Positions 9,235 through 60,860 of a stretch of DNA of 64,000 bases are shown here, in pieces. The DNA is taken from the NCBI GenBank assembly GCA_009103225.1, contig RHPI01000017.1, forward strand, positions 113,468 through 177,467. The letters run 5' to 3'. A program made the translations under genes and the position numbers. The first letter of the stretch is position 1. Every line of letters begins with the position of its first letter. The DNA comes from Chlorokybus atmophyticus (lineage: Eukaryota > Plantae > Mesostigma and Chlorokybus algae). The notes under the pieces were generated by a model that ran no database searches, had not been told where the DNA came from, and saw nothing but the letters and a program-made list of their open reading frames with translations.

Positions 9235-9644
9235 TGTTGAGGATATTCTTGTATCCGGTCAGCTTGCCCTATGGATAAGAATCGCCTCGAGAAGATTCAG
9301 GCGCGAGAAGGTTCCAATCGAGAAAGGTCCAGGCGAGGACTTCAGTCGAGAAGGTTTGTAACGGCGGTGGTCGCGAATCATCCACCGTCAACGTCATCAC
9401 CATTATTACTAACCTAGCTAGAAGTTTCGGTAACTTAGAAGCTTCGTTAGGTGTAGTATAAAAGACGCTCACTGCCTTTGTTAACGCGTTCTGATTTCGC
9501 CTGTCATTTGCCGTTGTCATCTTGCTGCCGCCGTGCATGCCTTTAGTTTAGGTTTGCTTCACTGGTGGAGACGCGGGGTAGGGACAGTGTGTACCCTACC
9601 ACGAACCCAACGACAAAAGCCAGAACCCAGTTCCTACTGCTACG

Positions 9645-13903: not shown

Positions 13904-14509
13904 CTAGAAGTTTCGGTAACTTAGAAGCTTCGTTAGGTGTAGTATAAAAGACGCTCACTGCCTTTGTTAACGCGTTCTGATTTCGCCTGTCATTTGCCGT
14001 TGTCATCTTGCTGCCGCCGTGCATGCCTTTAGTTTAGGTTTGCTTCAGGTTCCAGGCGCGGAGTCGAGTCCGGAGTCTGGAGACTTCCAGGCGCTGTAGA
14101 AGAAACGTTGTAGCTCGGTGGTTACGTCATTGTATGGCGCGTGTCATAGCTTGTTGGAAAGCTCATGAAAGTACCTACGTGGTGCAACTTAGAGCGCAGG
14201 AATCGGTTGAGTGTAGAAGTCGTGGTGGCTTCTAGAGTAGACAGGTGCAGAACTGGCGGGTATAAAAGCCCGCGGTATGACTTTGTTGTAATCCTTAGAA
14301 AGCCTTGTGGATCAGCCTTGTGTGTATGCTCTGGTAGAGTGTGTGTACTTGTGCTTGCACCAACTCCATGCATGGTCAGTAGTGTCCGAATCTCAACAGG
14401 TTATGGGCCCACACTACGCTGGTCTAGCAAGTGTCTAGAGGCGTGATAACGGCAGTAGGCTAGGCAAGGAGTTCTAGCTAAGTCTTGTGAGGTTGGGTTG
14501 AGTCCTGGA

Positions 14510-16192
14510 AGATGGCAACCAACTACGACAAGGTGACCGTGGAGCCTTTGAACGTGGACAACTACAACACATGGAGCGTGCGCATGAAGATGTTGCTGGT
14601 ACACAAAGACTTGTAGGAGTGGGTGGACCCGGAGGAGGCTGACCCTATGTCTACAAGGCAGAGTTCGGTGTTTAGGCAGCAAAGTGGGAGAGCGCTTGCC
14701 CTGATCGGTCTCAACGTGAAGGATCACTTGGTGTTGGTGGATGGCTGCAAGACTGCACGAGAAGCTTGGGAGAAATTGGCATCGCACTTCAAGGCGAAGA
14801 ATAGCGAGGAAGGTGCAGCTGAAGAGAGAGCTCGCTGGGTTGAAGAAGCAAGGCGCAGCGGAGCCTCTTACCAAGTATGTGTCGCGTGCACGAGAGTTGC
14901 AGAAGGACCTTCAAGGCGTTGGCTATGAGGTGAAAGAGTCCGAGTTGGTGTGGCAAGTACTGTCTGGGTTGCCTGAAGAGTATGACACGGTGATCACGGT
15001 CTTTGAGGGCTTGGAGGCAGAACCCACGGTGGACGAGGTGGTTCCAAGATTGCTGCAAGTGGAGTCGAGGCTGGCGAAGAAGCATGAGGAAGGCCCAGAG
15101 GCGTTGGCTTTCTCAGCGACTTCAGGAAGAGGTACTGATCGTTTTCAGCATGGGTCTGGGCGTTTCAGTGGTGATGGTGGCGGTTCTAGTGGTGGTGGTA
15201 GAGGAGCGTCAAGGAGTGACAGGGTCTGCTACTATTGCGGGAAGAAGGGCCACATCAGGGTGCATTGCTCGATGAGGAAGCAGCACGAAGAGGAGCGTGG
15301 TGGAGAGAAGCATCATGCCATGACGGGATGTGTTCAAGAGACGCCTATTGCCTTTCATGCAACAACGGATGGTGAGGCAGCTGGGTGGGTGCTGGACTCG
15401 GGTTGCACGAGGCATATGACGGGTGATTGTGAAAAGTTGGCGAAGTACAAGGTCTTGGAGAAACCTATGAAGGTGAAGTTCGGCAAGACAGAGGTGTTCG
15501 CGGTTGGTGTAGGGGAAGCTAAACTCCTGTCCCAGGTTGGAGGAAGGACGAGGCAAGTGTTGTTGAGAGAGGTTTTGTATGTCCCAGGGCTAGAGGTTAG
15601 CCTATTCTCTGTGCGCATCGCGGCGAGAGTTGGTGCTGTGACAGTGTTTGGTGGGGACATAGGAAGGGTAGTGCTGCGTGGTGTTACAGAGTTGGTTGGC
15701 ATCAACGTTGGAGGGCTCTACATCATTAAGGAGGTCAAGGGTGCGGAGATGCACAAGAAGACCAAGGTGGAGGTGTCCAAGTCAGCACCGGTTCTGAAGA
15801 AGATGAAGAAGAAGGCCAAGGTCGAGCCTGTTACTCGTAAGGGAGCAGGAGCTCAAGAGAAGGTGACGAATAGCGTGTCACATGCGAGTGGTGGAGTGAT
15901 GCCACGTGTGGAGGTTGCTGGTGGTGTCAAGAAGGCTGAAGGTGCAGTTCCGGAGCCCGTGGGAGCCAAAGGAGGCGTTGGCATCAGCAAGGACAAGAAG
16001 GAGAAGCATGGTGGTGGTGGTGTGCAGGACGTTGCCGAGAGTGAGCACGTGGGAGCACATGCAAATGACCATAAGAGTTGCAATAAGGGTGTGCAAGTGA
16101 AGAGCTTCAAGGAGGCGCTCATGAGAGGTGCGGGAAGTGTTTTCAAGATGGTTGGAAGAGCAAAGGATGGCGTGGGAGTTCGTCGCGCATAA
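14510..16192 (+). pseudogene. Element E gag-protease ORF with K/E/G-rich tail
   Basis: MATNYDK..NYNTW, then a stop and frameshift. CYYCGKKGHIRVHC, WVLDSGCTRHMT, GGLY, then low-complexity sequence with no integrase motifs. Confidence 0.9.
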
Positions 16193-16246
16193 GTACGCAA
16201 GGAGTTGGCATCGAAGGTGTTTAAAGCCAAGCTGCCCGCGTGGGAG

Positions 16247-16715
16247 CCTTGAGGATATTCTTGTATCCGGTCAGCTTGCCCTATGGATAAGAATCGCCTC
16301 GAGAAGATTCAGGCGCGAGAAGGTTCCAATCGAGAAAGGTCCAGGCGAGGACTTCAGTCGAGAAGGTTCCAGGCGCGGAGTCGAGTCCGGAGTCTGGAGA
16401 CTTCCAGGCGCTGTAGAAGAAACGTTGTAGCTCGGTGGTTACGTCATTGTATGGCGCGTGTCATAGCTTGTTGGAAAGCTCATAAAAGTACCTACGTGGT
16501 GCAACTTAGAGCGCAGGAATCGGTTGAGTGTAGAAGTCGTGGTGGCTTCTAGAGTAGACAGGTGCAGAACTGGCGGGTATAAAAGCCCGCGGTATGACTT
16601 TGTTGTAATCCTTAGAAAGCCTTGTGGATCAGCCTTGTGTGTATGCTCTGGTAGAGTGTGTGTACTTGTGCTTGCACCAACTCCATGCATGGTCAGTAGT
16701 GTCCGAATCTCAACA
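16247..16715 (+). repeat. 3' LTR of element E (starts CC instead of TG)
   Basis: Matches the split 5' LTR and the solo LTR; preceded by CGCGTGGGAG, as is the D 3' LTR. Confidence 0.95.
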
Positions 16716-16720
16716 GAAGT

Positions 16721-19175
16721 TGCTGGAGCTGTGCGCACAGTTGTGGCCTTGTTGGAGACGCAATCTAGCAACAAGATGAAGGCAATGAGGAGTGACCGAG
16801 GAGGGGAGTACATCAACAAGGAGTTGAAGGAGTTTTTCGCCAGCAAGGGCATACGCCACGAGACAACGGCACTCTACACCCCGCAGCAGAATGGAGCAGC
16901 TGAAAGGACGCCTCAAAAGGACACTCTTGGAGCGTGTTCGAGCCATGCTCAATGACACCAGGATGGACGACAGTATGTGGAAGGAGGCGGTACTCAATGC
17001 CAACTACATCCGCAACAGGTCTCCGGTGAGCTCAGAGCAGAAGACTCCGTGGGAGCACTTCTATGGAGCCACACCAGATGTGAGTGGTATGCGTGTGTTT
17101 GGATGCACGGCATATGCACTAGTGCCCAAACAGCTCAGGCACAAGCTGGAGCCGGTCAGCAAGAAGGGCATCTTTGTTGGCTATGAACCGAGTTCCAAGG
17201 CTTACAGGATCTTACTCGAGGACACTCAGAAGATCATGAGCAGAGAGGTGGTTTTCCATGAGGGATTATCACGACCGGAAGCAGGCTTCTTGCCTGAAGA
17301 TGAAGCACAGCCGGAGCATCCTGAAACAGTGGAGGCTACAGGCAAGGCCATCATCAACAACAAGGGTGAGCAGGACTCAGCCGCAGCAGACCAAGAGGAG
17401 CCGTACCAACAGCAGGAGCACGCAGCTCGGAGATACCCAGTGAGGGAGAGAAAGGCACCTGACTTCTTACACAAGGCACACGTCGCCAGTGTGCAGAATG
17501 AGGAGCCAAGCACCTACGAGGAGGCATTGTTAGCACCAGATGCGGAGCAATGGCAGCGTGCTATGGACGAGGAGATTGCGTCACTCCATGCCAACAACAC
17601 TTGGTCACTGGAGCAGTTACCGCAAGGAGTGAAGACCATTCCAGTGAAATGGGTCTTTAAGGTGAAGCGTGATGGTCAGGGCAACATTGAGCGCTACAAG
17701 GCAAGACTGGTGGCAAAGGGCTTCTTGCAGCAGGAAGGTGTGGACTTCACCAAAGTGTTTGCACCTGCAAGTAAGCATACCACCTTCCGTGCACTGCTAG
17801 CTGTGGTTGCTGCTGAGGACCTCAAGCTGCATCACCTCGACGTGAAGACTGCCTTCCTCTACGGAGAGCTGGAGGAGGAGATCTTTATCGAGCAACCACC
17901 TGGATATGAAGAAGGGGAGAGAGGCACAGCGTGCAAGCTGATCAAGGCACTGTACGGGCTGCGACAGGCACCGCGTATTTGGCACATCAAGCTCACCAAG
18001 GAGCTGGAGGCACTTGGCTTCACCGCATCCTCTGCAGACCCTGGGCTCTTCATCCATGCAGACAGCAAGGTCTGGCTGCTCGTATATGTTGATGACATCA
18101 TCATCACCGCCAGGCAGGTGCACCACCTGCAGGAGACGAAACTTGCTCTACAGCAAGCATTCTCAGTTCGTGATCTTGGAGAGGCCAAGTGGTTCCTTGG
18201 CATGGTGGTTGAGCGCGACAGGGTCGCTCGCACAATCAAGATCAGTCAGGAGTAGATGGTGAGCAGACTCGTCACCAAGTTCGGGCTCCGAGCCACTGAA
18301 GCGAGTGAGTCACTGAAGCGAAGACTAAGACCACACCGTTGGCACTTGGCACTGCCCTTATCAAGGCAAAGGATGAGGACGTACTCGACAAGGCTCAGTA
18401 TCCATATGGTGAGCTGGTAGGCAGCATGCTCTATCTGGCAGTGTGCACACGTCCCGATGTTGCACATGCTGTGGGAGTACTTGCTCGCTACATGTCTGCA
18501 CCGAGCATGGAGCACTGGAGAGCAATAAAGGGAGTACTACGCTATGTTGCTGGGAGCGCAACAGTTGGCATCAAGTTTGAGAGCGGGAGCACTGAGTTGG
18601 AGGGCTACTGCGACTCGTACTTTGCTGGTGACCTCAACAGCAGGAGGTCCACCACAGGCTACGTCTTCAAGCTGAACGGAGGCGTGGTGAGCTGGAACAG
18701 CAGGCTGCAGCCAACAACAGCAGCATCTACATTAGAGGCTGAGTACATGGCAGCGGCAGCAGCAGTAAAGGAGGCACTCTGGCTTCGCAAGCTCATGGCA
18801 GACTTGGAGCACCCCATGGCGTGCATCGTCATCAACTGTGACAACCAAGGAGCCATCAAGTTGTTGAAGCACCCTATCGCCTCGGCAAGGACGAAGCACA
18901 TTGATGTCATGCATCACTTTGTGCGTGACAGAGTCACAAGGAAGGTGGTGGAGTTCCAGTATTGCAACACTGAGGGCATGTTGGCGGACTTCATGACAAA
19001 GCCATTGTCACCGCTCAAGTTAAGACTTGTTGCGCAGGACTTGGCATCTGTGTTTGACTATAGGAGCAAGCGTCGGAGGTCAAGCTGCTCGCGTGGGAGT
19101 GTTGAGAGTCATTCCTACATACGATTAGCATCGACCCTCCACACAGGAGTAGAAGGTCGTAAGGACGAGCACTAG
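16721..19175 (+). pseudogene. Copia D pol, 3' part (integrase core, RT, RNase H)
   Basis: RSDRGGEY, QQNGAAER, YKARLVAKGF, LDVKTAFL, VYVDD, KHIDVMHHF. Frameshifts near 16910 and 18340 and a stop at 18253. Confidence 0.95.
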
Positions 19176-27745: not shown

Positions 27746-27799
27746 TGTGTTCTTGGCTTATCATGTCAGAAACGCCGCGGCCTCGTGCGTGTAAAGGCA

Positions 27800-28164
27800 G
27801 GTGTGGCGTTGGCTCAAACTCAAGTCATTTTCGGTGCATTCACTCTCAACTGTACTTATGATGTATATAAGTTTCGGTTTATGGTCCGCTTGCCGGACCA
27901 GTGATGGTTGGATTTCTACAATTTTGCGATTTGGTCTCTGGTCCGCTACCCGGACGCTACCTGGTCCTAACGCGATCGAAATTGGCGGGGCCATACATGG
28001 TGCACCCCCCAAAACCATGGGACCATTTACTGAGGTTTGGACTATGTATGGTTCGACTGTCAATGACAATCCGACCATATATGATCCGCTAATCTCGTTT
28101 AGCAGAAGAAAATCCTAGTCCAGAGGTACGAACCACTTATGGTCCTTTTACGTGAATCAGTGTG
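27800..28164 (-). repeat. Right subterminal/TIR region of element C
   Basis: GGACC/GGTCC motifs ending in GTGTG followed by ATA. Confidence 0.75.
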
Positions 28165-33182: not shown

Positions 33183-33850
33183 CACACGATATTTCCCGCT
33201 AACCAGCCCTGGTCTGCACGTACGGACTAGGGCCAAATTGCCGAGGGGGGCTTTTGGTCCAAACCAGGGTCCCCCGCTTTGGTCTGCACGCGCGGACCAG
33301 GGCTGGTCCAAACAGTACGTACAATCCACCCCTATTAAGAGCATACTAATTATCCTCCGCTATCTTATGCTTCTGGCGGGGTAATTCTCATGACGTCACA
33401 AAACTTATTATGCTCTTGGGTGTGAAAGCATAAATATGCTATAAGCGCGTTTTCTTCACACCCATCACTGTGACGCCCAATGCATGACGCGTGTTACGTC
33501 ACGCCCATCGCACCATCATGTTTGTCACATTGATTGTTTGTCACACCTCGCCCATCACGCCATATTCATTAAGCGCGTCACGTTTTGTGCCACACCCGTC
33601 ACGCGCTACTCCCCTGAACTTGGAATCTCCCTCACTAAAACTTGCAAAATTTACATGAAATAAAGTTATGCTCTTCGCGGTTGAGCATATTCTCTTAGGC
33701 ACCAACATTTGCCTGTATTCCGTTCGGTAATCTCATCTTCTATGCTATTAGCGGGGGTATTCTCTTAAAGCGAAGTCTGTAAGCGGGGGTAAATTGACCT
33801 AATTGTCCCACCGTCCCCGGAAAACCGCGCCAGCCCTGGACCCGGTCATA
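33183..33850. mobile_element. Orphan terminus of a B-family element, interrupted by a MITE-like insert
   Basis: 33183-33321 and 33800-33850 align with the reverse complement of 55650-55812; it begins CACACG. No partner end with a CTC TSD was seen. Confidence 0.75.
33322..33796. mobile_element. MITE-like insertion (about 475 bp)
   Basis: Splits the aligned B-family end. Imperfect ends CAATCCACCCC / GGGGGTAAATTG; TA on the left only; internal TATGCT and GCGGGGTA repeats. Confidence 0.5.
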
Positions 33851-34089
33851 ACTAGTTCAATTTAAAATGGTTATGGTTATGGTTATGGTTCTTTGTGAGA
33901 ACCATCGTTGGTCCGTATCAATGTTATACGGATTTACTACTATTACTACGTATTTACCACTATTAGGGTGATTCCGCCTAATCCCGGTTGCTAACCTAAT
34001 TTCGTGCATTCACCGGTAATTATGAGACCCCCGAATTTTTGAAAATTCATGGCAAACGCACTAAATATTCGTTGGATTTACCGTTTCAG

Positions 34090-40205: not shown

Positions 40206-41277
40206 GTAACTAATCTGCTAGTCACTATGTTGTTGTGAACACAATTGTGGCGGTTGTGCCTGAGCTGATCTGCTGCTAGATCTCCAAGTTGCACAAAGGC
40301 ACACACCCCACTGTTATCAGTAATTGCACATGCAACAGCCACACTTGGAGAATTACCAGCAGAGCAGCTCAGCGGTAACCAGAGTGTAAAGGGCAAACAA
40401 AGTGTGTGTAGAGCAATGGTCATTTCGACGAGTCACTAGAGTCACTAGGTTCACTAGGAGGGTCGCGAGTGGGGAAAATTCCATTACAAGTTGGTGTGAG
40501 ATTGGTACCGGGCGTTGCACCAGGTGCAGGGACTTCGGAGCCAGTAAACACACTCCAGCGTGCAGCAATATTGTTGTCGCACTCGATCGCAACGCGCAGG
40601 CCAGCAGCGCCATAGCACAGGGCTTTTTACGCGCGGACCAGTCGTACGCGGCCCGTAGACCACGTCTGGTACGTTGTAGCGTACCAGTGCCGCGACTGGT
40701 CCGGCATGATCGGACCACTAGTGGTCCGGCCCCGGAGCCCGCCGATATGGTCCGAATGACCGGACCAGGGCTGGTGGCGTGTCCCGCGGCTTGTAGACCG
40801 GTACAGCACTGGTCAGCACGCGGCCTGAGCAGTAGGACCAAGGCTGATCGCATGCCCTGCGGCCTATGAGCCAGGGCAGCACTGGTACAGAATGCATGTA
40901 CTGTACGGACCAATTATGTCCTCACAAACGGGACCAAGCTGCACTGGTATGGTTGCAAGCGGCCCTCATCGACCATGCATGGTTCCGAAACCGAAACAGC
41001 ACTCAACAACTCAACAGCTCTTTTGGATCATTGATATATCATGATAACCAACGGTGAAGAATGACGTCGGAAGCATACGACACATCTCACCTGGTCCGTT
41101 GCTCCCAAGGTCACGTGCGCCAATGCTAAACGAGTAGCAGGCACTGGGCATGCATGGTCCCCTGTCCATTTACTAGGGTTTTGGGCTTGCGCTGCAGTCT
41201 CGGCGGCGGCGGCGGCGGCGGCGGTGGCGAAAACCTTTTGAACAGCTGGTTTCGTGGGTACTACGCATGCACCTAGC

Positions 41278-41794
41278 ATGGCGGCCCAAAAAGCAGCTGA
41301 TATTGCTGAAAGACTCCACCAGTCTATCGGACTCAAGCTACCTGCAGTCAACCTTGCAGCTTTGCGCAAGCGGAAGCAGCGTTCCAAGTTGGTTGTCAAC
41401 GCAACGCAAGGTCTCCTACGTCAGAAGGACTTGGAGTTGAGTCAAAGAGAGCAAGCTCTTGCCCGCAGACAAGCTGAGGTGTCCCAACTTTTGGCTGATA
41501 GCGGCCTCGCTGGTGACAATGCGTCCCCCATGGAGGTGGATGGGCAGGCAGACCCCTCACTCAGGTAACATCCTTGTCCCCACTAGCTAGCTTTCAAGCC
41601 TCATTGCGACACAGCCAGCACAGATTTCTTGACAGCCGTTGTTAAGCGCCTAATATGACTCCCTGCAGGCCAGCTTCAGCAACTCAGCCTGCTGCAACCG
41701 CTTGCCAGCCATCCACTTCGCATTCCCCTCTGTCACCAGCTGCTGAAGCTGGAGGTGGCTCATTCGCCGACGAGTCATCTGATCATGTGGAGAG

Positions 41795-41827
<33 letters not shown>

Positions 41828-44800
41828 TCGTCAAGTTATCTGCAATTGCAGTTCCAGTGGATGCCGCGGCATGGTAAGCAGTGCGGTCTTTGAGTTATGC
41901 AATCTATTGCTCTGACCGAAAGTTTCATAGTCCAGTATCTACGAGTTATGCACTCCATTGCTCAGACCTAAAGTCTGATAGGCACTGTCCAGTGTCTACG
42001 ACTTATGCATTCCTTTGCTGAGACCTAAGGACTCATAGGCACTGGACAGTGCCAGTCTGGTTTATGACACAGCCATGCACGCGTGTGTCTTGCTTGTGAT
42101 TCTTGATAGCGTGGTGATGTGGATTGGTGTTGATCGCTGGCGTGCTAACCAAGATCTGTCATCATAGATGGTGGACGAAGCAGTTGCAAGGGCGCACCGT
42201 GCACTTGACCTGGCAGTTGCCGCAAGCAGGTGGGCACCACCTATTCCCCACAGTCAACCTCGAGCCCAGCCAACCACCATCGGAGTCTACTACGAAGAAG
42301 TGGCTGGATATCTACCTAAAGATTGTGACAGCCCTGGAAGATTCTGGTGTCCAGGTTGCTCTCGTCAACGAGATTATGAAGCTCATCTTTGGCCAGATAA
42401 ATTCTGTGGTCAAGCTGGCCTTGGAGGTTCCTTTTAAACAGGAGCAGTTGCGGGATGACATCGCCAGCCTCATAGGCGACACAATATCGCACAGACATGT
42501 CGCGGATGAGCTGCCGACAGACATTGCCGCCGTGGATAAACTGTTGGCCGCGCTCGGCATGCCTGTTCCTCAGCGCCTGACCATCTGTCCCACATGCAAG
42601 TACTTGTTTGATGCACCTTATCACACACTCAATGAAGATGACGAAGACTCGGACACGAGCGAGACCAAGCAAAAAATGATTGATCGCCTTCACAACACAC
42701 CGTGCGGAGGGGGATGCGGCAGGGTTCGCAAAGAATGTTGCGACTTCTTGTACAATCGTATAGGTGCCTGGCTCAGCGCCAAGTTAGCTGTCCCTTCAAT
42801 CGCTCACGACTATCTGGAGGAATGGCGCCACAAAGATGAGTGGTTGCACGTCCATGTGGAACAAGTACCTGCTGCAAACACTGAGTACTGGCATGGTGCG
42901 AAGAAGCCGCATCAGTGCAGCTTCTGGGACCCTCGCCACAAAATCAAGCTGCCTGTGTCCTGCGCATTCTGCCACCACATCCCGGATGTCGATCTGGAGC
43001 ATCACAACGCAGGCGATCACGCGACATTTGAATGCTCAGGGTGCCACAAAACCAACCATCAGATGGTACAGCAAGCTCTTGGCGACCCTCGCAACATAGC
43101 CCTGCTAATCCACGCCGACGGCTTCAGCTCAACAACCACTGTGAAGCACAGCTGCACCGTTGTCAGTGCCTCTGTGCTCAATGGCGGGAAGCGCATTTCC
43201 TCACAAGAGTCTTCCGTCATGCCTTTGCTCTTTGTTCCCACTGATCAGCTCCCAAACGGTGTGGACAGTCTGGAGCCCTTTCTGGAACCACTGGTGCGTG
43301 ACCTGGAGAACCTCTACTTGAACGGCTTCACTGTTCGTTATGGCCTCGATTCCAATCATGTCGACAGCCGCGTGCTTGATCAACGACCAGGTAATGACTG
43401 GGTTATAACATGTTTTGTCACCTATATCACCCAAAGTCTCATAGGCACTGTCCAGAGTCTACAACTTATGCAGTCCATTTTTGTGTATGCTAAAGTCTCA
43501 TAGGCACTGTTCAGTGGCTGCGACTTGGTTATAGCATATCTGCCTTCTTGCGGTCTATGAGACTGTCATAGGCTGCACTGCCCAGTGCGGCCTATTACAG
43601 TCTCTATCAGACTGGTTGTGAGATACTGATGTTGACTTCATTGCAGGTCAAGAGATAACGCTGCGGGTAGTGCTGTGGGCATGGACGGGTGACCAGCCAA
43701 CACAATGTGAGATAGGCCAGTTTAAGAATGGAGGCCTCGTCCCTTGCCGGCGTTGTCTCCTCAAAGCCACTCAGCACCAAGTGCCCCGGCGTGCTAAGCA
43801 GGTGGAAGATACTACGAGGACACGTACTGACCATTTTTATGGTGACAATCGCTACTACTGCCGCCATCCCCCAGCAGAGAGAGCAGCAAAGGATGCGTTC
43901 GACAACGCGTGCATGGTGGACTCACTCGATGGCCAAAACCGGAAAGAAAAATCAATGGAGTGCGGCATCACAGGGAAATCTCCACTCTGGCGGCTGTGGC
44001 ATCTGTATGAGTTTAACCCTTGCCGTGACTTGGTCTATGACACGATGCACCTGTTGCTGGAGGGGCTTTGCAAAAGTTTCGTGCACAGTACGCTGGGTGC
44101 AGACAGTTCAAAGCATGTCGAAGACATTGCCAAGGTGGAGCGCAGGCTGTCTCAGATGCGCATATCACGCCCCATGGACTTGAAGAGCAAACGTTTCCCA
44201 AGAGGCATCAGCAAGCACCTGGCTTGGTTCAAGGCCCAGGACTTGCGATGTTCGTGCAGTATGCTGTGCCATACGCTGTGTCCGATCTGGTAGACGAAGC
44301 AACCAGAGACGTCAGCTTTGCGCTTCACTTGCTCATCCGCATCTTCTTCCACAACTCTCGCCTACATGGCTGGACTGCGGAGCTGTTGGAACTTGCTGAC
44401 GCTCTTTTGAAATATTGGAGGGTCTACTCGGAGGACCTGTTTGGCACCAACAAAAGGCCCAACGAGCATGTGGCCGGTGCCGGTCACATTCTGGAGGACA
44501 TCATCTGGCACGGGAGTCATGATGTGTACTGGTGTTTTGTGCAAGAGCGCACTGTGTCCAACTATGTCAACACCTTCACCAATGGGAAGCATTTGAGATC
44601 AGCTACATGCGGCGTACACTAAGGAGATGGTTTCTGAGGACGCTCAACATCATGCGAGAAGATCAGAGGACTGGAAAGCTGTTGTGCCACCGAGCTAATG
44701 ATATAATGGCGCACTCTCAGCAGGTTTACCAGCCTCTGAGTGGAGCATGTAGTGACTGTCATTACGAAGTGCGCACTCAAAAGCACGCCATGGAGCTCTG

Positions 44801-45995
44801 GACCCTCGCTGAGAAATTCCCAGACTTGGAGCATGCGCGACTGATCAGAGAAAAGGGCATCCTTATTGGCAGCACCAGGAAGCCTGTCCCTCTTCAGAGA
44901 CCCTTGGCCTTGGAAATCAAGCGCGTTGAGGACATCACTGGCAACTTGCCCGAAGGCATACGCAAGTTCCGCGCATATCTGCGTAACGGGGTAATCTACA
45001 GGTGTGGTATAGTCTACGAATTTTGCAATCTATTGATCTGACCTAAAGTCTCATAGGCACTGTCCAGTGTCTACGAATTATGTAATCTATTGCTCTGACC
45101 GAAAGTCTCATAGGCACTGTCCAGTGTCTACGAATTACGCATTCTATTGCTCTGCCCAAAAGTCTCATAGGCACTGTCAGGTGTAGCATAGGCAGTGTCT
45201 ACTAGAGTCTCATAGGCACTGTCTACTGTCATCTCTTGATACAAAGTGAGTGAGTAAAGCCTTTGGTATTTGCAGACGCAGAGGCGTTGATAACGTGAAG
45301 ATGGCGGACCCAACTGTCGCACCATGCCGGGTGGTTGAGATCTACCTGTTCAATTGGCGGAAATCCACTATCCATGTGCAAGTGCGGCCTTATACAAAAA
45401 AGCGTGATGCCATGGGCAATGACCTGATTGACAGAGACACTGGTGCACAGTGCATTGGGCGTTTGGCAGATGAGTTTACGCTCATCGGTGGAGACCAGTT
45501 GCAACGCAAGCTCTGGGTGTTGCTCAACCGTGATGTAGCAAATCATCAATTGGCGTACGACTATGACAGCACAGAGTTGAGAGTCACTGCAGCCGACATC
45601 CCCTTGCCGGTGTGGCCAGAAAAGGGCGATGTCCTGGAGATGCGGCACAACAGCAAGTCCATTTTCGACTTCAGACTTCCGCATGAGCCCCCAGATGAAG
45701 ATCCTGCTGACCCACCCCCTTGGGTTGTTGTGGTCAAAGAGGTGCGGTCCGACGGTCATATGGTAGTCGACTACCTGAAGAAGGCAGGGGGGAGGAGGCT
45801 AGGCGTCTGGGTGGTTAACACAGCTGCGAGCGACCAGGTGGAGGACCCTTTCTCAGCCAAAACAAAGCTCGACTGGCCAAGGCAAGGGAGCAGCAGAAGC
45901 AGCTGCGCTTGGACTGAGAGAAGTAGAAGTGATGGACGGCGAATGAAATTCAACCAACATCGCATGTATTGGAAGCCAGGACAGCAGGCAGCAAG
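41278..45995 (+). CDS. Spliced EnSpm/CMC transposase of B with C-terminal BAH-like and SH3/Tudor-like regions
   Basis: CPTC, GDPRNIALLIHADGF, FLEPLVRDLENLY, WTGDQP..PCRRC, YDTMHLLLEG, PNEH..YWCFVQER. Then YR..DNVKM..CRVVEI..VQVRPY (BAH-like) and PEKGDVL..WVVVVKEV..VVDYL. Frame changes near 44240 and 44620 are either short introns or frameshifts. Confidence 0.85.
41890..42050 (+). repeat. 57-bp intronic minisatellite (copy cluster 1)
   Basis: Unit GTCTCATAGGCACTGTCCAGTGTCTACGAATTATGCAATCTATTGCTCTGACCTAAA. Confidence 0.85.
43430..43560 (+). repeat. 57-bp intronic minisatellite (cluster 2)
   Basis: Same unit, about 2 copies. Confidence 0.8.
45010..45225 (+). repeat. 57-bp intronic minisatellite (cluster 3)
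   Basis: GTCTCATAGG at 45048, 45105 and 45162. Confidence 0.95.
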
Positions 45996-46304
45996 TGAGT
46001 GTGTTTGCACTTGCATTCACGTGTTTGTGAAGTGCGTGTGTCTGCATCATAGACCAATTCGGATAACTGCGCCTTGCAGACAACTATGTGCACTGTTGTG
46101 TGTGCATGCGACTGCATGTGTGATGGCCGAGCAAGTAGGGCAAGCAATGAACATGTAATGGCAATATATTACTGTATACACTTATGCACATCTGTTCTGC
46201 AGGCTATGTACACTGAATGGATGCCTATAAACCCAGCCTGCAGCTGGACTATAAGCAACCTGAAGTAGGTACCTGGGTGCTACTGACTCAGTCTATAGGC
46301 CATA

Positions 46305-49300
46305 CTAGGGTGGTGGTGGTGGCGGTGGTGGTGGTGAGTGTCTGCTCAAGTAGTAGCCGATCAGGTTATGATAAATGGCTTTGGTGTAGTGTGGGCCCAG
46401 GTGCATAACTTCCCGTTGTGCCGCAGTGAGGTGTGTATATGATCTGTTCGCCATGTTCTGATCAAGCAGAAGCAAAAAGTGAGTGAGGCCCGGCTGCAGA
46501 GCACCAAACGCCTCCATAGTGTTGGCGTACAAAGGGAGCCCATTTTCCGCTTGCCGTTGATTGATGTCACGGAGGTAATGGTGCGCTGTGTTTCGGATCA
46601 AAACACACAGTGCAGCAGGATCACTGTCCCAAGTGTCTCGTGTCGCTTGATTGTTCCTCTGCGCCCAGGCATTGCGAGCTTGTATGCAGACCGCAAGCTC
46701 TGGAGCCATCAGCTGTTGCCAACCTTGCAAGTACTGTTGTATGCGATGGGTAGTCTGTGCTCCTCCTTCGCTCAACGAACGTGCCCGCGCGCCGGAACTT
46801 TCAGCCAGGAAGTCCTCCACCACAACCCGCATCCACTCATCAACCAGCACGCCTTCCATGCAAATTTGCTGTTTTTCAACGAGCTCCAGGTCATCTTCTA
46901 AGTTCGTGACCCGCCTATCAAGTTGATTGTTCTCCCTTTGCTGTTCAATGATTTTCTCTTGCAGTTCAGCTTCTGGCGGTAGTGCGGACGTGGAAGGAAT
47001 GTCAGCAGCTCCACCACCTGGCATTACAGTCTGCAGCATCTGAAGCGTTTCCTCGAGCCTCTGCTGGGTATCTTCGAGCAGCTTCTCTGTATGACTGACA
47101 CGCTGCATGGCTCGAGCAACGTTTTCTTCCGATTTTGCCAGGTTCGCCTGCGCCTTTAGGATTTCCGGGTCGTCCATGGTGGCTGGTCGCTTGCCGTCTT
47201 TGATAAGCTTCTTATTGGACTTTTGGAGTTTGGCATTTTCCTGACGCAGGCGTTTCACCTCCGCATTCAGGGCGTCTGCTTGCCTGCTTGCCTCTGCTTG
47301 CAGCTTGCCCCCAGTCTCTTGCGTTTGAGAGGCCAGCCGCTGGAGTTGTTTGTTGAGAGACTCCACTCTTGCTTTGAGGCGGTTCTTCTCAGCAGTCAAA
47401 GATTCAACCTCTGTTTGCAGCTTGCGCCCAACCTCTTGCGCTCGTTGAGAGGCCTTCCCGAATTTTTCATTGAGAGACTGCACTGCTGCACGGAGCTTCC
47501 TCCTGGCCTCCTCGCCTGTGCGCAGGCGCTCGCGCAGGCTCTCATTGTCCTGCCGTAGGCTGCTCGCCTGCAGCTTCTTCCTGGCCTCCTCGGCTTGGCG
47601 CAGGCGCTCACTCAATTGCAAGTTCTCCTCTCGTAGGCGGTCCTCTTCACGCACCTGCTGAGCGGAGGACTCCTGCTGCTGCTGCTGGCCGCTGCTCTCC
47701 TCCAGCTTCTTCCTGGCCTCCTCGCTTTGGCGCAGCCGCTCAGTCAGGCTTGCATTGTCCTGTCGTAGACGGTCCGCCTCCTCAAGCGCCTTCTGCTGAG
47801 TGGACGCCTCCTGCTGCTGCTGGCCGCCGCTCTCCTGCTGCTTCTTCCTGACCTCCTCAGCTTGGCGCAGGCGCTCACTCAGTTCTGCATTTTCCTTTTG
47901 TAGGCGGTCCGCCTCCTCACGCGCCTGCCGCTGGAGGGAGGCCATTTGCTGAAGCTGGATTTGGAGTTGAGAGGCCTCCTCGGCTTTGCGCAGGCGCTCC
48001 TGCAGGCTCTGGATCTCCTCCAAGCGTGCTGCTGCTGATCCTTTGAAGCTGCTCCTCGCCTGCCGTAGGCTCACATTCTCTGTTTCCAAGCGTTGCCTCT
48101 CCGCATTGGTCCACCTCAACTGGTGCTGAAGCGTGTCTTCCTGCTGCTTCCGAATGGAGTCTTGGTGTGACTGCTGACGCTGAAGTCTTGCATTAAGGGC
48201 GTCAACCTCTGCTTGGAGCTTTTGTGCTTGCGCGGAGGGCTGCTGCTGAAGCTGGTCAAGAAGGTTCTGCTGCTTTTTCCTGGCCTCCTCGGCTGTCGCC
48301 AACTGCTGTCGTAGGCGGTCCCTGTCAGCAGTGGTGGCAACCAACTCTTGCGCTGCATCCTCACGCTGCAAGGCCAGCACCAACTCTTCATCCAACTCGC
48401 TGATCCTGTTAAAGGCGGCCTTCACGTCATCTTCAATGCGCTTGCAGCGGGTGAGGTGCTCTTTCAAGGCAGGGCGTTCACCGCACAGACATTCAGCTTC
48501 TTCCCTCGCCAGCTCTGAACGCCGAGCATTGATTTCTCCCAGCTCTTGCAAAGTTTGTTGTAGCTGTTGTACGCGCTGGCTGTCTTCCGCTCTGGCCTGA
48601 TTCTGCTGTTGCAGCCTTTGTCGCTCAGGATTGGCTGCATCGAGAGCGGCCTGCAGCTGTGGTATGCGCCCCACGGCCTCCTCTCTTTCCTTCTCCTGCT
48701 TTGCAAGAGCCACCTCCAGCTTCTGTATGCGCCCCCCGGCCTCCTCTCTGGCCTTCTTCTCCTGTTGCAGCAACTCTGCATGCTGTTGGCTAGCCTTGGC
48801 TGCTGCTTCAACAGCGGCTGATAACTCCGCTGCATGGATGCGCTTGACATCAGCGCTGGCGGATGCAACGGCCTGGGTGCTTGTAGACGCCTCTTCTAGG
48901 TGTTGCTGCATCGAAACACCAAGTTAGAGTACAAACACGAAACAGCGGGGTCATAGACCGAAATGGACAGTGCGGCCTGTGACGCACAAGTAGCCATAGA
49001 CTGACTAATGCTGACTTTGGCCAAGGGTTACCTGAAGTTGGGGCACTTGCTGTTGGAGGTTCTGGACAAAGCCTTCAACCAACTTGGCTATGTTGCTGGC
49101 ATTGGCGACTCCTGAACGTGCAGCAGCGATACCGTCTTCCAACTTCTTACGAGCATCGTCGTCACCGTCACCGTTGCTGTCATCATCGCTGCTTTCATGA
49201 TCGCTGGGTTCATCACCACTGCCGTCTCCATGATGATCACCTCCAGCAGGTTCATGATGATCACCTCCAGCAGGTTCATCACGACCTCCAGCAGGTTCAT

Positions 49301-50141
49301 TACCGCTGACATGCTGCCCCTCAGCAGCACCTCCTGGAGTCCCTCCAGCAGTTTGATGGCCACGGTCTATGGCATCCTTCTCTGCGCTTCCTTGTGGTGG
49401 CCTGTCCGGAAACACTAGAGGAACTGAAGGTCGCCCCGAAACCCCTCCCAATGCTGCAAGTGCAGCAGCAGCAGCAGCAGCAGAGGCAAGAGCAGCATCA
49501 ACAGCAGCTTGAGAAGGATTGCTAGAGGTAGCCGCAGCACCAGAAGCAGCACTAGAAGGAGTCGGACCAGGAGCTGCAGCAGGAATGGATGGCCAAGGAT
49601 GGTTGCACTCCCACTTGTTGATGAGGTATGCGCGCAAGGACTTGTAATTCTCAGCCCATCCTGGATCCTGAAAATGGATGGTCTTCATCTGCTCTTCCAG
49701 CCAAACTTCTCGCTTCTGCTTCCTCCGATTAGCAATGGCGTTGATGCGTAGCCGGCGTGTCTCCCACTCCGCCTTGTTGCGTTGCTGCAATTGCTTTTGC
49801 TCAGCCTGCCACTGTGCAGTCGTATCTTGGGCGTTTTGAACATTGGTGCGCACGGCAGCTATCTGCTCCTCAGTCAACCAATGTCGCCTGCTTTCATTCA
49901 GACCATTGCGCACCATGGACAAAATGGTCTTCTCGATTCTTGACTGATAATCCTGCTCCTTCAGCCTGTGCTGATTTGCAGCCCGTGTCACCATGGCGCC
50001 CTGAGCGGCAATCTTTAGAAGGCCTTTGCGAATTGTAGTCTCTGCCTTACGGAACACTTCCTTGGTAAGTTTCTGCGAATCATAACCACCAGTTAGAACA
50101 CGAATTACACACAACTCATTTACGTTTAATAACACAAACAT
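46305..50141 (-). CDS. Long coiled-coil protein exons with internal EEADRLRQ..ERLRQAEEARKK repeats
   Basis: 868-aa and 378-aa open frames with heptad-rich repeats at about 47480-48330. Probably the 3' part of the SET gene. Confidence 0.7.
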
Positions 50142-50246
50142 ACCCTATGTTCTTGCTCTTGTTCTATTCTGGAGTCTATCTGTCTTAACAGCAGGAATAG
50201 TCTATCTAGCACGCGTGTAAGCTCAGCGCACTTGCTTTCAGCTGAG

Positions 50247-51850
50247 TCAAATATCCCTTTTAAAAGGCGTACAGACGCCTCTCTGACAGTGTGATTGACT
50301 GTGTCGTTCTGGTGACACAAGTGCAGTATATGAATGCACACAATGACATGTACGACCATGCACTGACAAAGCGTTCTCAACACTTACATTCTGTCTTTGA
50401 TTTCGGGCGACTTGTGGTCGTTTCAGCACCCTCCATGTGTAGGCGCCTAAAGATTCACCAGCTTGACGCGGTGCAGTGCAAGCGGCGAGGTACGCGCCGT
50501 CTTCGAGCGCGACACCATGGCGAGCTGCCATCTCTGTTGCCTCCTTGATAAACTTTTCTCTGGCCGCCTCGAAAAAGAACTCCATGACCTGAGGTAAGAT
50601 GGTGATCAGCACATTGTTTGCAATGCTGAATGATAAGGTCATAGACCGCACAGCTCTCACAGATGCAGTCTATAACAGCAGGAAACAGTGTCTGGCAGAG
50701 CAAGTGATGTCTATAGGCATGAGCCACAGGCTGCATATACTCACATGGTCTGTAGGTTGATCGTCTGGAGGTGGAGGGAAGGGATCGTATTCCATGAGCA
50801 GCTCTTCGCCGGCGGCGATGTCACTCTGACTCCTAACCTCAGCTGCCTGCACCGCAGCCTCATCAACGGAGTCCATGATGTGGCAGTTGGGTTTGTACTG
50901 CGTATCGCGGCTGGAGTTGAGGAAGCCAGCTATGTTCCCATATCGAGGGTGGCCATCGATAACAGGGCTCTGGCGGCGTGGCACGTCCCTGATGACCTGC
51001 AGGTGGTATCGCTGGTGGTGCAGGTACTCCTTCTGAGGGAATGTCTGCATCTCCCGGTAGGAGTACCACTTGCCGTCAAAGACCATGATGCGGTCACCCT
51101 TCTTAATAGGCTGGCAGGTGAACAAGCCGAGCGTCATCCCAGAAATTCTTGTTCTGTGTAACAAGCGACAAGGTTAGCAACCAAGGCGTTGTAATGGCAT
51201 TTTTTTCGCTAACAGTTGCATGCTGCATGTGCTTACAAATGCAAAGGCTCCAGTGTGATGCTTTCGCAGATACTCCTCGGTGACTCTCCGCACGTTGTCG
51301 ACGGAAACTCTGCTTTGTTTGGGATGATTCAGGGCCTGCACGCCAACATATGCTTCATGTAAGTCAATTTTGTTGCATAGTCTTTTGGCCAGATATCAGT
51401 TCACTAGCATGCATACAACGTCTATGAGTCTACAAGTCTATAAGAACAAATGCACTTTCACAACATCACACGCACCCGTACTGCTTTGGAGAGAGAATCC
51501 CCCATCCGTCCCTTCAGCTCATCTGCTGTCTCCCTGCCGCCCTGGTTGGTTCGTCTGCGCATGTACCTGCAATATCTGATGTGCAGGTGCTGCGCGATCT
51601 TTGCAGTCTTGGTGTGTGTGGTTTCTGGAAGCCCGTTGGACTATAAATGGCCCGCCTTCACATTTGTTCTGCAGTAGAAACAGTGCCAATAGAAAGTCCG
51701 CTGGTGTGAAGGCTGCCTCCGAGTCTCCTCTGAAGTCGACAATGCCACCGACACGGTAGGGATGTCATCATCCATGGTGTTTCTCAGCTTGCTGATCTCT
51801 GCAACAACTTGCACTGGATAACACCCTTGTGCAACACAAGCCAGCACTCC
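50247..51850 (-). CDS. SET-domain gene, 5' exons
   Basis: LGLFTCQPIKKGDRI..F.G, YGNIAGFLNSS..KPNC, DIAAGEELLMEY at about 50770-51140. No post-SET cysteines. Confidence 0.85.
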
Positions 51851-51923
51851 GCTACCACACCTCTGCCAGCACCGCCAGAACTACCTTAGGCACACCAAAC
51901 ATCAGGCTGCCGGCGGTGTGACA

Positions 51924-52000
51924 GGCGACCGCATAGGCCGCTCCGACGAACCCTAGGTCACGGGCGACCGCATAGGCCGCTCCGACGAACCCTAGGTCAC
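51924..52000 (+). repeat. 39-bp direct duplication in divergent promoter
   Basis: GGCGACCGCATAGGCCGCTCCGACGAACCCTAGGTCAC twice (51924, 51963); each copy includes a telobox-like AACCCTAG. Confidence 0.95.
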
Positions 52001-52231
52001 ATGCACTGAAAGTTGATTCATTTGGAAGTGTTTGTTGTCAGGTTCCGTCATTTGGAAGTTTTGTTCGCTCGCGCGTGCGTTGTGCGCATGTGTTGTGCGT
52101 TGTGCGCAGTATGACTTCGGCACTGGTTATCGCAGCTGCAATAAGTCGCGTGCTGTAGACTCTCGTGCTATAGACTGCTGTGTGAGCCTTTTGTCACCTG
52201 AAAGCTTAGGTGCTTTGTGCATAGTGTAACA

Positions 52232-55110
52232 ATGGTGACCGCAGTGCCTTCTGCTAGCCAAGTGTTCAACTGTGGCAACAACGGCCAGAAAACTGGGGAC
52301 AGGTTCCTGAGGGACAACTTTTCCTGTGCACCCCACCCATGTGCGAAACATGGACAAGTTCACCAACAAGCTCAAACAGTGGGAGCAAATCCCTGGTCCA
52401 GGTTGGAAGGAGGTGAATTTCGACAAGCGGAGCAAGGATCATGCAGCGCAGGCCAGCATTGCCAAGCTGGAGAGGTTCTGTGAGGAGTTAGAGCCGGAGC
52501 TGGAGCCTCTAGTGTTTGGGGAAGGCATAGAGCTCCGCATGTCCAGAGGTCAGTTGTTTTCTGTGAAGGTTTGCTCTGAATGCCTTGTGTGTAGATCGGT
52601 AACTGTTCAGGTGAAACTAGCCCGTATTCATGCATATAGCAAGCTTTGCTAGCCCTCAAGCTGTTGTTGCTGCTGGTCAGTGTTGCCACTGTTGCAAGTC
52701 AGTTGATATCACGCTACTTGCCAAGTTGTCGCGTTACTTGATGGCTTGCTGTTCAGCTGAATTCAGCTAGTCTTCATGTATATCCAGCTGTTTTTACTAC
52801 TGGTTAGTGGTGCCACTGTTGGTCGGTTACTGTTTGTCAAGCTGGAACACTGGACAGTGCCTATGAGTCCTTAGGTCTCAGCAATGGATGGCATAAGTCG
52901 TAGACACTGGACAGTGCCTATGAGTCCTTAGGTCTCAGCAATGGAACGCATACGTCGTAGACGCTGACAACAGTGCCTATGAGCATCTAGAAGCAATGGA
53001 TTGCATAAGCAGACACTGGACAGTGCCTATGAGTCTTTAGGTCACAGCAATGGAGTGCATAAGTCGTAGACACTGGACAGTGCCTATGAGTCCTACGGTC
53101 TCAGCTATGGAAATGCATAAGTCGTAGAGTGTCTTGGACGGTGCCACCTTATGAGACCAAAGCAGCTTTTTGGACATGTGGACATCCTTATAACTTTTGC
53201 TTGGCAGAGCACATCCGGGCATATTTCATACAACGCCAATGGACTTATCGGAGGGGCGTTAAAGAAGAACGAGGTGAACGCCAAGGACAGTCCAGGGAGC
53301 AGCGGGTCCAGCTCCGTGCGCATGCTCGAGAAGCAGAGCGAACTGCCAAACACGGCACAGCTGCTCGTCGCCGGTCTGTAGGGTGGGGCAGAGTTTTCAG
53401 CCCTGACGATTACAGCCCTTCGCAGACAGTCGTTCTGTGGTGCCCCTTGAGCGACGGGCCCCTTCCAGATGACGTGCTGCGGGCTACTTGGCTCAAATTC
53501 AGGTAAGGACTGTGTGCGCGCATGTATGATTGCAACCCTGAACTGTGACAACTCCACTAGAAGTGAAGCAAGCTGAATGTACAGCTGTTGTGTTGTGTTA
53601 TCTAACACGATGCCTGTTCATGAGGTGCAGACATGCAGACGATTACGACCGAGACAAAGTCTTTGACGTCGATATGCAATCCTCAAGTCGTGAAGACCCA
53701 TGTGTGCCCGTGGCCATTGCCACCATCCTTGAGATTGCCGAGGTGGATGAGCCCTGCCGCACATACAGCGTGCAGATCATTAATTGGCTGCCAGTGTTTT
53801 GCGTGGAGGACGACAGCGTGCGGCCGTTCATACCTATCAGGTCGCAAAGGCTCATGCATGGCAAGACACCGGATCATTACACACGCGCCGAGCTAGAGGT
53901 AAGTTGGTGATTGTCAGTCACGCACAGTCTATGCTTTTGTCACTGCATGTCATCAAGTGCGAGACGTGCGTCGCGTGTAGTTGGCTAAAGTGTGCACATG
54001 TGAACCGCCTATGACACTGACAACTGATGGAGTGCAGAGCGTGACGGTTGAGTGGCCACTTATGTTCATGAGCCAGATGGGCACCTGCGTCTGTGAAAAC
54101 GGTGAATGCAGCTTCAATAGGCACGTCCGGATGAGGGAATGCCAGGCGAGAGTACTTGAAGAATTGAACACCAATGCGCAGCAAGATGATCAGGTTTGTC
54201 AGCTATGTGCGCGCAATTTCTTGTTTCAAGTGCTTTCTGGTTGTGCTGATGATGTGCCCATGCAGGACCACGAGGTTTCAGTGGATGATGAGAAGCTGGA
54301 GATCCTGCGGCTGTGTGCTGTGGCATTGAGCAAACACCTGCTAGGGCGCAGATTGGCCGGCAATGGGAATTCTGGCGGAAGAAGCAGGTGGCGCTAATGG
54401 AGAGCGTGGCACCTCTTCCCATTCGAGACCAGGCGCGGATGGACAGCATTCCTACACAGCGTATCATGCAAGCGGTTGTGCAGTTTGCAGTGAAGAAGAA
54501 GTGGCTGGGCGAAGACCCAACGCAGGGTGGTCAGCTGGGCTGGATAAACACGAGGAAACGGCCAGGTATGTTTTGAGCTTATAGACCGCTCATAGGCTTG
54601 GTAGCTGTGACCAATGCACAGTGTCACAATGCAGTCTATAGGGTATGCTCGTAAGCTGGTAAGCTGTAAGCTAATAGTGCCATGTACGAGCAGTCTGGTC
54701 TCTGTGTATGTGATTGTACACATTCGCCACTCATTGTGAATGCAGGCATGCCGGATGAAAGTGAAACGCCTGAGCCCAAGAGGTTCCGCTTCATGGGGCG
54801 ATGGGAGCCAAGCAGGACGGCATCCTCCAGATGATAGGTATCAGAGATGTGCAAAGTGCAATTGTTGCATGTTGCTACTGTTACGTGTCTATTCTTTAAG
54901 AAATGTACATTGTGTTCTACAGTTGTGGTGTTGCTCATATGCAGTGTGCGCAGTGTCTACGACAATCTGTTGTTGGTGCACGCGGCGTGCACTCGTTCAT
55001 CTGAAAGGCCGTCTACATTTGCAAGTATGGAGCAGAGTATGGAACAGAAGGAACGTGTGCGTGCAGTGCCGAGATCACGTGGTGTGCGCAGCATGCGCTC
55101 AGTCTCATCA
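52232..55110 (+). CDS. Unknown spliced Cys-rich gene in element B
   Basis: Coding-like exons bounded by GT/AG sites, with Cys clusters CTC..CVCENGEC..CQLC and CVQC..CAAC. Family not recognised. Confidence 0.5.
52845..53135 (-). repeat. 57-bp intronic minisatellite (cluster 4, inverted, about 5 copies)
   Basis: CACTGGACAGTGCCTATGAG repeated. Confidence 0.95.
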
Positions 55111-55815
55111 TAGGCAGGCTATGAGCGCTGGTGATCTTAGTAGCTATGAGAACACTGCTGTAGTTAGCATAGATGTTTGACACTTTGCAGGTCTCGCTGA
55201 TTGCCAGACACGCACTATATAATAGAATGGGTTACCGTGAATTGCTGGTGCATGGGTCATAGACCAGCATTGGTGCAGGATGTCAGCGGGTGTCGTGCAC
55301 CAATGCTGGTCCCTGGATGCAAGCATGGACCAATGCAGTGAGATTCGGCTGGTACAAAGAAATGGTTGGGTGTGGACCAGGCATGGTCCCGCCAGCAGAG
55401 CCATGGTTGGTCCCACTAGTCGGGACCATCCTTGCAGACCATCTGGGCTAGACATTAAGATACAAGTAGACCATGCATGGTCCCACAGTGCGAACCAAGG
55501 ATGGTCCTGCTACTCGGGACCAGTAGTGGTGATGCTTTTGACACTGTGCCAAGAGCGGACCATCCTTGGTGCATGCAGCAACGCGCATGGCAGACCAGCA
55601 TTGGTCCCATTGCGCTCGTCATGATAACAGCAACCAAGGCTGGCCCGGTTTTTTGGGGGACCGTGGGACAATTACGTATTGTTTGGACCAGCCCTGGTCC
55701 CCGCGTGCAGACCAAGGCGGGCGACCCTGGTCCGGACCCCAAGCCGCCCGGGCGTTTTGGCCCTGGTCCGTACGTGCGGACCAGGGCTGGTCCGTGGAAA
55801 AATTTCCGTGTGTAG

Positions 55816-60199: not shown

Positions 60200-60860
60200 G
60201 ATTATTCAACCAAACTGTGAGTGAATAACCACTTATATGTAGGACTATGCGTGTGAGCAGAAGTGCTGTATTATTCAATTATCATTTGCGTGAAAAATCA
60301 ACCAAAGGCAGCAGTGTTCAACCATACTATGGGTGAATAACCACTCATATATAGGACTGTGTGAGAGCAGATATGCTGTATTATTCAATCACAAATCGTA
60401 TAATCACTCGCCAGTGTGGTACATGTGCTGTTGAAACAGCTTTAGTATGTGTGAACATTAAGCCAATATGCGTGTGAATAATTACCTATAAGGAGGACAT
60501 AGTGTGAGAGCAGGCGCTGTAAATATTCATGCACACAAAGTATGAATAATCACTTGGTGCCATGGTACAAGTCTAGGACCATGTATACCTAAGAAGACTG
60601 AATATGCAGTTCTGTCGCGAGTGAATAACTACTCACATGTAGGAGGTTGTGTGCGAGATGGACAACTACAATTATTCATGACCAAAACGTGTGAATATCC
60701 ATTGCTTGTATTCAGGGCATTTGGCCTGAATAATCAGCAATTGTAACAGCGACCTCTGCAGCCATGCAAGTGGCGAGTTCACACATAAAACAGATGAGTA
60801 TTCAGGGCAAATGCGCTGAATTTTCAGAAATTCGGGGGGTCCAGAATTACCGGTAATTGG
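60200..60860. repeat. Right subterminal array of A
   Basis: Four related GTGAATAA..TAGGA..GAGCAG..TATTCA units (about 60218, 60331, 60472, 60620) plus the inverted core. Confidence 0.8.

Follow-up and report, generated by a model that had tools for sequence, protein, structure and literature searches.

What kind of gene joins a divergent SET domain to a very long coiled coil, and to what does it belong? The question is raised by positions 46305-51850 of a 64-kb window of Chlorokybus atmophyticus DNA (the window being the whole stretch analyzed, which is eukaryotic with GT-AG introns and a G+C content of ~52%). The region is probably a gene carried as a passenger (accessory gene) by a CACTA/EnSpm transposon of 15,197 bp, coding for a Cys/His end, a minimal SET domain, a coiled-coil rod, and an end domain. 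An initial annotation made from the sequence alone had described an EnSpm-like transposon bounded by target-site duplications (TSDs), carrying a SET domain with NSS in place of NHS and no post-SET zinc cluster that was followed by more than 1,200 open codons of repeat-expanded coiled coil. The element, the NSS variant, the missing zinc cluster, and the open length were all recovered here, and the extent of the coiled coil was revised.

The element at 40616-55812 is a well-bounded cut-and-paste transposon of the CACTA/EnSpm type. Direct reading of the flanks identified TAG at 40613-40615 on the left and at 55813-55815 on the right, giving a duplicated target site of 3 bp (TAG), or 2 bp (TA) at minimum, in agreement with the 2-3 bp of CACTA/EnSpm elements. 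The termini start with CAC(T/A) as in this superfamily (CACAGGG… on the left and CACACGG… on the right) and form an imperfect but unique pair of terminal inverted repeats (TIRs), namely CACAGGGCTTTTTACGCGCGGACCAG at 40616-40641 on the plus strand, as aligned to the right end, and CACACGGAAATTTTTCCACGGACCAG at 55787-55812 on the minus strand with its outermost position at 55812. Among the 863 CACA-starting 30-mers of the window, and besides the left end itself, the right end alone reached an alignment score of 11 against the left end (null of 2.4 ± 1.8). Arrays of short subterminal motifs, a further mark of CACTA/EnSpm elements, were present at both ends with 11 palindromic GGACCA/TGGTCC motifs in the left subterminal region (40616-41315) and 17 in the right (55113-55812, ending in the right terminal repeat) versus none in the 700 bp flanking each end and only four in the 13.8-kb interior (chance expectation ~0.12 per 250 bp). 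A strict TIR search requiring 12 of 14 matches did not recover these ends, and an Rfam search of the element returned no match.

Related features were observed elsewhere in the window. At 33183-33321 lies a lone terminus from this transposon family; a 120-nt stretch of it is 87.5% identical to the element's right end, with the likeness starting precisely at CACAC. Additional GGACCA/TGGTCC clusters at 2001-2250 and 27751-28000 (4-5 per 250 bp versus ~0.12 expected) are probably ends of other elements of the same superfamily. Finally, an inverted repeat pair (34005-34075 and 60800-60860; 45-60 nt and ~88% identical) spans ~26.8 kb including the whole 15.2-kb element, which may be nested in a larger, unrelated DNA transposon.

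Within its termini, the element holds a plus-strand transposase gene, the SET gene lying tail-to-tail with it, and a third gene divergent from the SET gene, with the 3' ends of the SET and transposase genes at most ~150 nt apart. The tnp2/EnSpm-type transposase gene (41254-46230, plus strand) is spliced, with exons read from their splice sites as ending at 41873 and then at 42110-43390, 43647-45001, 45276-45995, and possibly 46203-46230, and its product gave a sub-threshold match to Pfam Transposase_21 (PF02992; E 4.9e-5, 23.1 bits). A word search with the transposase returned a single relative, P0001, a fragment on a Logan contig with 35% identity. Two frameshifts were identified near 44245 (…WFKAQDL / AMFVQYAVPY…) and near 44590 (…NTFTNGKH / FEISYMRRTL…), both inside exons where there is no space for an intron, and the stretches at both sites are presumed to resemble conserved motifs of plant CACTA transposases.

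The SET gene was modeled from minus-strand open reading frame (ORF) blocks that run from 51173 to 46305, all in one frame. The exon blocks were searched singly against the databases and the joined model was translated solely to check the open frame. Exons 3-7 are connected by four canonical GT-AG junctions, all in phase 0, giving 1,488 open codons that end with the stop codon at 46305-46307, and the SET domain and coiled coil most likely belong to one spliced gene, as modeled. The SET-domain exon (exon 3, 50745-51153) is followed by exon 4 (50388-50669; 94 codons with a single Cys and no Pfam match), exon 5 (50144-50278; 45 codons, with its splice junctions read), exon 6 (49032-50072), and exon 7 (46305-48905). 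From its junctions, periodicity, and repeats, exon 6 comprises a charged helical part and then Ala/Pro/Gly/Asp/His low complexity, and exon 7 codes for a charged helix of ~680 aa that is heptad-periodic and contains 45-aa repeats, followed by a helical end domain of 186 aa and a poly-Pro tail. Upstream, a putative first coding exon (51476-51775, minus strand; donor CGG|GTGCGT) is rich in Cys and His (…HCFYCRTN…HLHIRYC…) and is interrupted in frame 2 by an in-frame TAG at 51643-51641, being open on both sides of this stop. Between it and the SET exon, a candidate exon of 99 nt (51237-51335, minus strand) has good splice sites and a phase incompatible with joining both neighbors. Pfam searches with the pieces of the Cys/His exon and the 99-nt exon returned nothing, and the similarity of the 99-nt exon frames to viral pre-SET segments favored none of the frames.

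The coiled coil was assessed from hydrophobic 3.5-residue periodicity against shuffles. A heptad signal (z up to 7) was confined to model residues ~230-300 and ~590-1300, with no periodicity at the A/P/G/D-rich residues ~420-560 or in the last ~190 residues. Tandem Repeats Finder identified units of 135 nt (45 aa) x2.8, 78 nt x1.9, and 24 nt x3.1 in the coiled-coil region. The annotated length, open frame, and tandem repeats thus stand, the coiled-coil character fitting only ~700-850 of the 1,488 codons and the rest being low complexity and end domain.

The ORF at 50670-51164 (minus strand) matched Pfam SET (PF00856) with E 2.7e-10 and 41.1 bits (cut-off 22.4) over profile positions 2-104 of 105, and the closest solved structure for this SET domain alone was ASH1L (E 0.0075). 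Its motif GFLNSSRDTQYKPNC aligns with ASH1L RFINHSCDPNC, keeping the Asn, replacing the His with Ser (NSS), and inserting four residues before PNC. The segment GEELLMEYD aligns with ASH1L GTELTYDYN and keeps the catalytic Tyr of ELxxxY, which is invariant across the three-sequence alignment described below, and IMVFDGKW aligns with ASH1L IIEYLGEV, the Tyr of the (I/V)xEYxG motif being replaced with Phe. The post-SET CxCx4C cluster is absent, with EYD being followed by PFPPPPDDQPTDH and then by exon 4 with its one Cys.

Relatives of the SET domain were sought by an exhaustive HMMER search of 1.84 billion representative proteins (E<=0.001), which gave three matches of which only two, P0003 and P0004, are true relatives; the top match, P0002, was rejected as a repetitive artefact. 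P0003 (165 aa; E 1.9e-6) has NSC at the NHS position and P0004 (426 aa; E 1.6e-5) has NSS, and both are complete unspliced ORFs on Joint Genome Institute (JGI) metagenome contigs with genes of giant viruses (nucleocytoplasmic large DNA viruses, NCLDV). The contig of P0003 (L003) codes for an EsV-1-7 cysteine-motif protein with five repeats (E 9e-49), a DUF5901 protein (E 3e-81), a TnpB-like protein, and JmjC, and that of P0004 (L002) for an NCLDV major capsid protein (Capsid_N E 1.9e-55 and Capsid_NCLDV E 3.2e-49), Bro-N/T5orf172, and a JmjC gene adjoining the SET gene. The three SET domains share VIDGxPxxYGN[IV]AG[FY][IL]NS[SC] and AGEELLxxYDPF, and the viral proteins terminate immediately past the latter motif. 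Judged from this alignment, the His to Ser replacement and the absence of a post-SET characterize a small clade otherwise found in giant-virus-type DNA, rather than being products of decay; NSS is shared with the nearest relative, P0004, and is thus inherited. A word search with the SET exon returned nothing; a metagenome scan with the SET alignment identified no further clade member, and scans of IMG/VR with the alignment and the degenerate pattern YGNxAGxxNS returned nothing. A metagenome match to the alignment (L004) was discarded because its SET domain is bacterial and unrelated, has an ordinary NHAC motif, and is encoded next to ATP synthase genes.

As a separate observation, a JmjC gene lies beside the SET gene or a few genes from it on both viral contigs (L002:2548-5200 and L003:6158-10498; E 1e-7 and 2e-6). 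The two genes are a possible writer and eraser pair for lysine methylation.

If the region is a passenger gene of the transposon, the protein made by intact copies would oligomerize through its rod and its Cys/His end would bring it to chromatin or to the repeated motifs of the element. The SET domain would methylate a histone lysine or, as a catalytically weak domain, bind histone tails, in both cases setting the element's chromatin state. The protein may also bridge the element ends, as TnpA in classical En/Spm. In maize En/Spm, TnpA is likewise a second protein encoded by the element in addition to the transposase, and the element's ends are likewise dense in short subterminal motifs. TnpA differs in lacking a SET domain and in being produced by alternative splicing from the transposase's own transcription unit rather than from a convergent gene. 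Activity in an intact copy would provide a tractable case of a mobile element placing histone marks on itself or its host.

Several points weigh against this passenger-gene reading. The transposase score of 23.1 bits is below the Pfam gathering cut-off of 28.6, the TIR is imperfect with ~19/27 positions matching, the exon chain is a model built from sequence, and the 5' part of the SET gene lacks a consistent joining, as the 99-nt exon and the SET exon do not fit in phase. In addition, the activity of the SET domain is uncertain because Ser stands in for the canonical His of NHS and, in this copy, Phe (FDG) for the Tyr of YxG, compared to FFYDG and FVYDG in the viral relatives, and we can only infer the DNA-binding role and the substrate.

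The same replacements feature in a possible but on balance doubtful alternative, in which the SET domain is a pseudo-enzyme and the protein a structural or DNA-bridging accessory akin to TnpA, the SET domain binding histone tails or having no role. The Ser of NSS and the FDG of this copy are consistent with such a protein, as are the predicted long dimerizing rod and Cys/His N-terminus, and the dense subterminal motifs of the element need a binding protein. Against it, the Asn of the NHS motif, the Tyr of ELxxxY, and a GxG-like start are retained, and the NS[SC] variant is conserved in intact viral ORFs, which suggests a working fold under constraint.

The three-sequence clade profile matched the Chaetomium EZH2 SET domain best among solved structures (E 1.1e-5) with ATXR5 next (E 0.006), and the viral members alone again had EZH2 and ATXR5 as weak best matches. 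PBCV-1 vSET, the studied example of giant-virus SET proteins, was not among the PDB matches of either the SET domain of the window or the clade profile. There is a slight lean toward an H3K27-type target because EZH2 and ATXR5, which like ATXR6 are H3K27 methyltransferases, match the clade profile; the subfamily assignment is not secure because the SET domain of the window alone is nearest to ASH1L and the CXC/SANT or PHD modules of EZH2 and ATXR5 are absent here. The giant-virus proteins are alike in having a minimal SET domain without pre-SET or post-SET zinc clusters and with NSC or NSS for NHS, and unlike in their ~30-34% identity and in their short, unspliced genes. It is conceivable, though rather improbable, that a clade of NSS-type minimal SET enzymes, maybe EZH2/ATXR5-like H3K27 methyltransferases, is private to giant viruses and the CACTA transposons of this alga, and that the transposon form, joined to an oligomerizing rod and a DNA-targeting end, would enable the element to write the state of its own chromatin. 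If true, genes for chromatin writers would be trafficked between giant viruses and transposons and would serve the self-regulation of mobile DNA.

The C-terminal non-coiled domain (46308-46865, minus strand; 186 aa) contains one RNTAHH motif of the Rx4H form and a single-sequence AlphaFold model of it was all-helical with a predicted local distance difference test score (pLDDT) of 46. These two features would fit a HEPN/KEN-type RNase and hence a SET-RNase effector, which is very unlikely: the motif is expected by chance because Rx4-6H occurs in 87% of shuffles of the domain, the HEPN/KEN profile was not matched, and a model at this pLDDT is uninformative for the HEPN four-helix fold. The domain had no relative in the word search, Protein Atlas, Pfam, PDB, or the metagenome scan.

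That the SET and coiled-coil gene is a host gene or an integrated giant-virus remnant beside the transposase, and not cargo, is very unlikely, even with the only relatives of the SET domain lying on NCLDV-type contigs. The gene sits entirely inside the TAG-flanked termini with its 3' end within ~150 nt of that of the transposase gene, it is spliced and the viral ORFs are unspliced, and the element yielded no further hallmark gene of viruses.

The initial annotation had also assigned a BAH-like tail to the transposase and had suggested that marks written by the SET protein could be read by it. The tail exon (45276-45995, plus strand), joined in frame via the intron at 45002-45275, had no Pfam family, BAH or other, at E<=10, no match to PDB sequences at E<=10, and no usable neighbor in the Protein Atlas, and its single-sequence AlphaFold model (pLDDT 34) was uninterpretable. 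The BAH assignment is therefore unsupported by four independent tests, and the reader-writer loop has no basis. A module in which the lysine mark is read at the transposase end, so targeting or protecting the element, is very unlikely, as it has for it only that one element holds both the SET gene and a transposase whose additional tail exon (~240 aa) is partly beta-rich, and in this copy the transposase frameshifts lie upstream of that tail.

The passenger gene was examined here in a copy that is slightly decayed and probably dead, and that is an ordinary member of its transposon family. Its lesions are the TAG in the first exon, the splice-phase mismatch between the 99-nt and SET exons, and the two transposase frameshifts, amounting to 1-2 per ~4-kb gene. 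The element has no runs of N, and assembly errors are a possible source of the lesions. The long open frames had been taken as a sign of a young or selected gene; they fit a fairly recent insertion, and since disabling lesions are present in both the transposase and SET genes they do not indicate selection, of which this copy has no sign.

Transposons that bring along modifiers of chromatin or DNA have recently become a theme, examples being the ParB-methylase genes of Sola and other elements and the TET/JBP genes of KDZ/Plavaka elements in fungi. In the red alga Bostrychia moritziana, Plavaka (EnSpm/CACTA) elements of 17-19 kb carry the accessory genes PAG1-3, of which PAG2 has an N6-adenine DNA methylase domain joined to SET, and SET genes in Helitrons and HarbingerS elements are cited in the same preprint (bioRxiv 10.1101/2025.02.11.637652). 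The present element is similar as a CACTA-superfamily element in the 15-19 kb range with several accessory genes, one with SET, and internal tandem arrays of short repeats. It differs from PAG2, as far as the description of that gene allows, in having a long coiled coil after SET and no methylase, no exon block of the SET gene having a Pfam match to the N6-adenine DNA methylase domain (PF01555). Ectocarpus has giant EnSpm elements (EnSpm-1/2_Ec32 and EnSpm-N1 to N3) that reach 15.2 kb and have the same overall build, with accessory genes mostly of unknown function (Genome Biol 2025, PMC12477816, Supplementary Material 3). In contrast to the present element, no SET is mentioned for their accessory genes and the TSD is given as 2 bp compared to TAG (or at least TA), and the proteins printed for Ectocarpus, including Plavaka-1 ORF1, do not resemble those of the present element. 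SET-bearing transposons have thus already been published, and what is new here is the architecture of a Cys/His end, a minimal SET domain, and a long rod, together with the apparent link, by similarity, of a transposon SET domain to giant-virus SET genes beside NCLDV capsid, EsV-1-7, and JmjC genes.

The third gene candidate (52300-55100, plus strand; donor AG|GTCAGT) consists of several ORF blocks that are protein-like and in part rich in Cys; they had no Pfam match, and none of the loci that were fetched holds a relative. In the divergent region of ~500 bp between it and the SET gene, a perfect direct repeat of 39 nt x2 (51924-52000) may be a shared promoter element. Tandem arrays of a 57-nt unit were identified in three successive transposase introns (41886-42051, 43429-43526, and 45012-45230, plus strand) and, inverted and in five copies, within a gap of the third gene that resembles an intron (52847-53128, minus strand). 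The arrays have 2-5 copies of a unit whose core, CTCATAGGCACTGTCCAGTGTCTACGA, holds the small palindrome CACTG-TC-CAGTG, and the unit did not occur outside these four arrays in the window. The array showed no notable single-strand folding (z -1.8), and the arrays could serve as sites to which a protein of the element binds, or could be what is left of small elements nested there.

The window outside the element is copia and gypsy retrotransposon sequence. At 7661-19175, copia-type gag, integrase, and reverse transcriptase ORFs enclose a complete-looking gypsy-type gag and a pol ORF of 1,103 aa, forming a set of nested retrotransposons.

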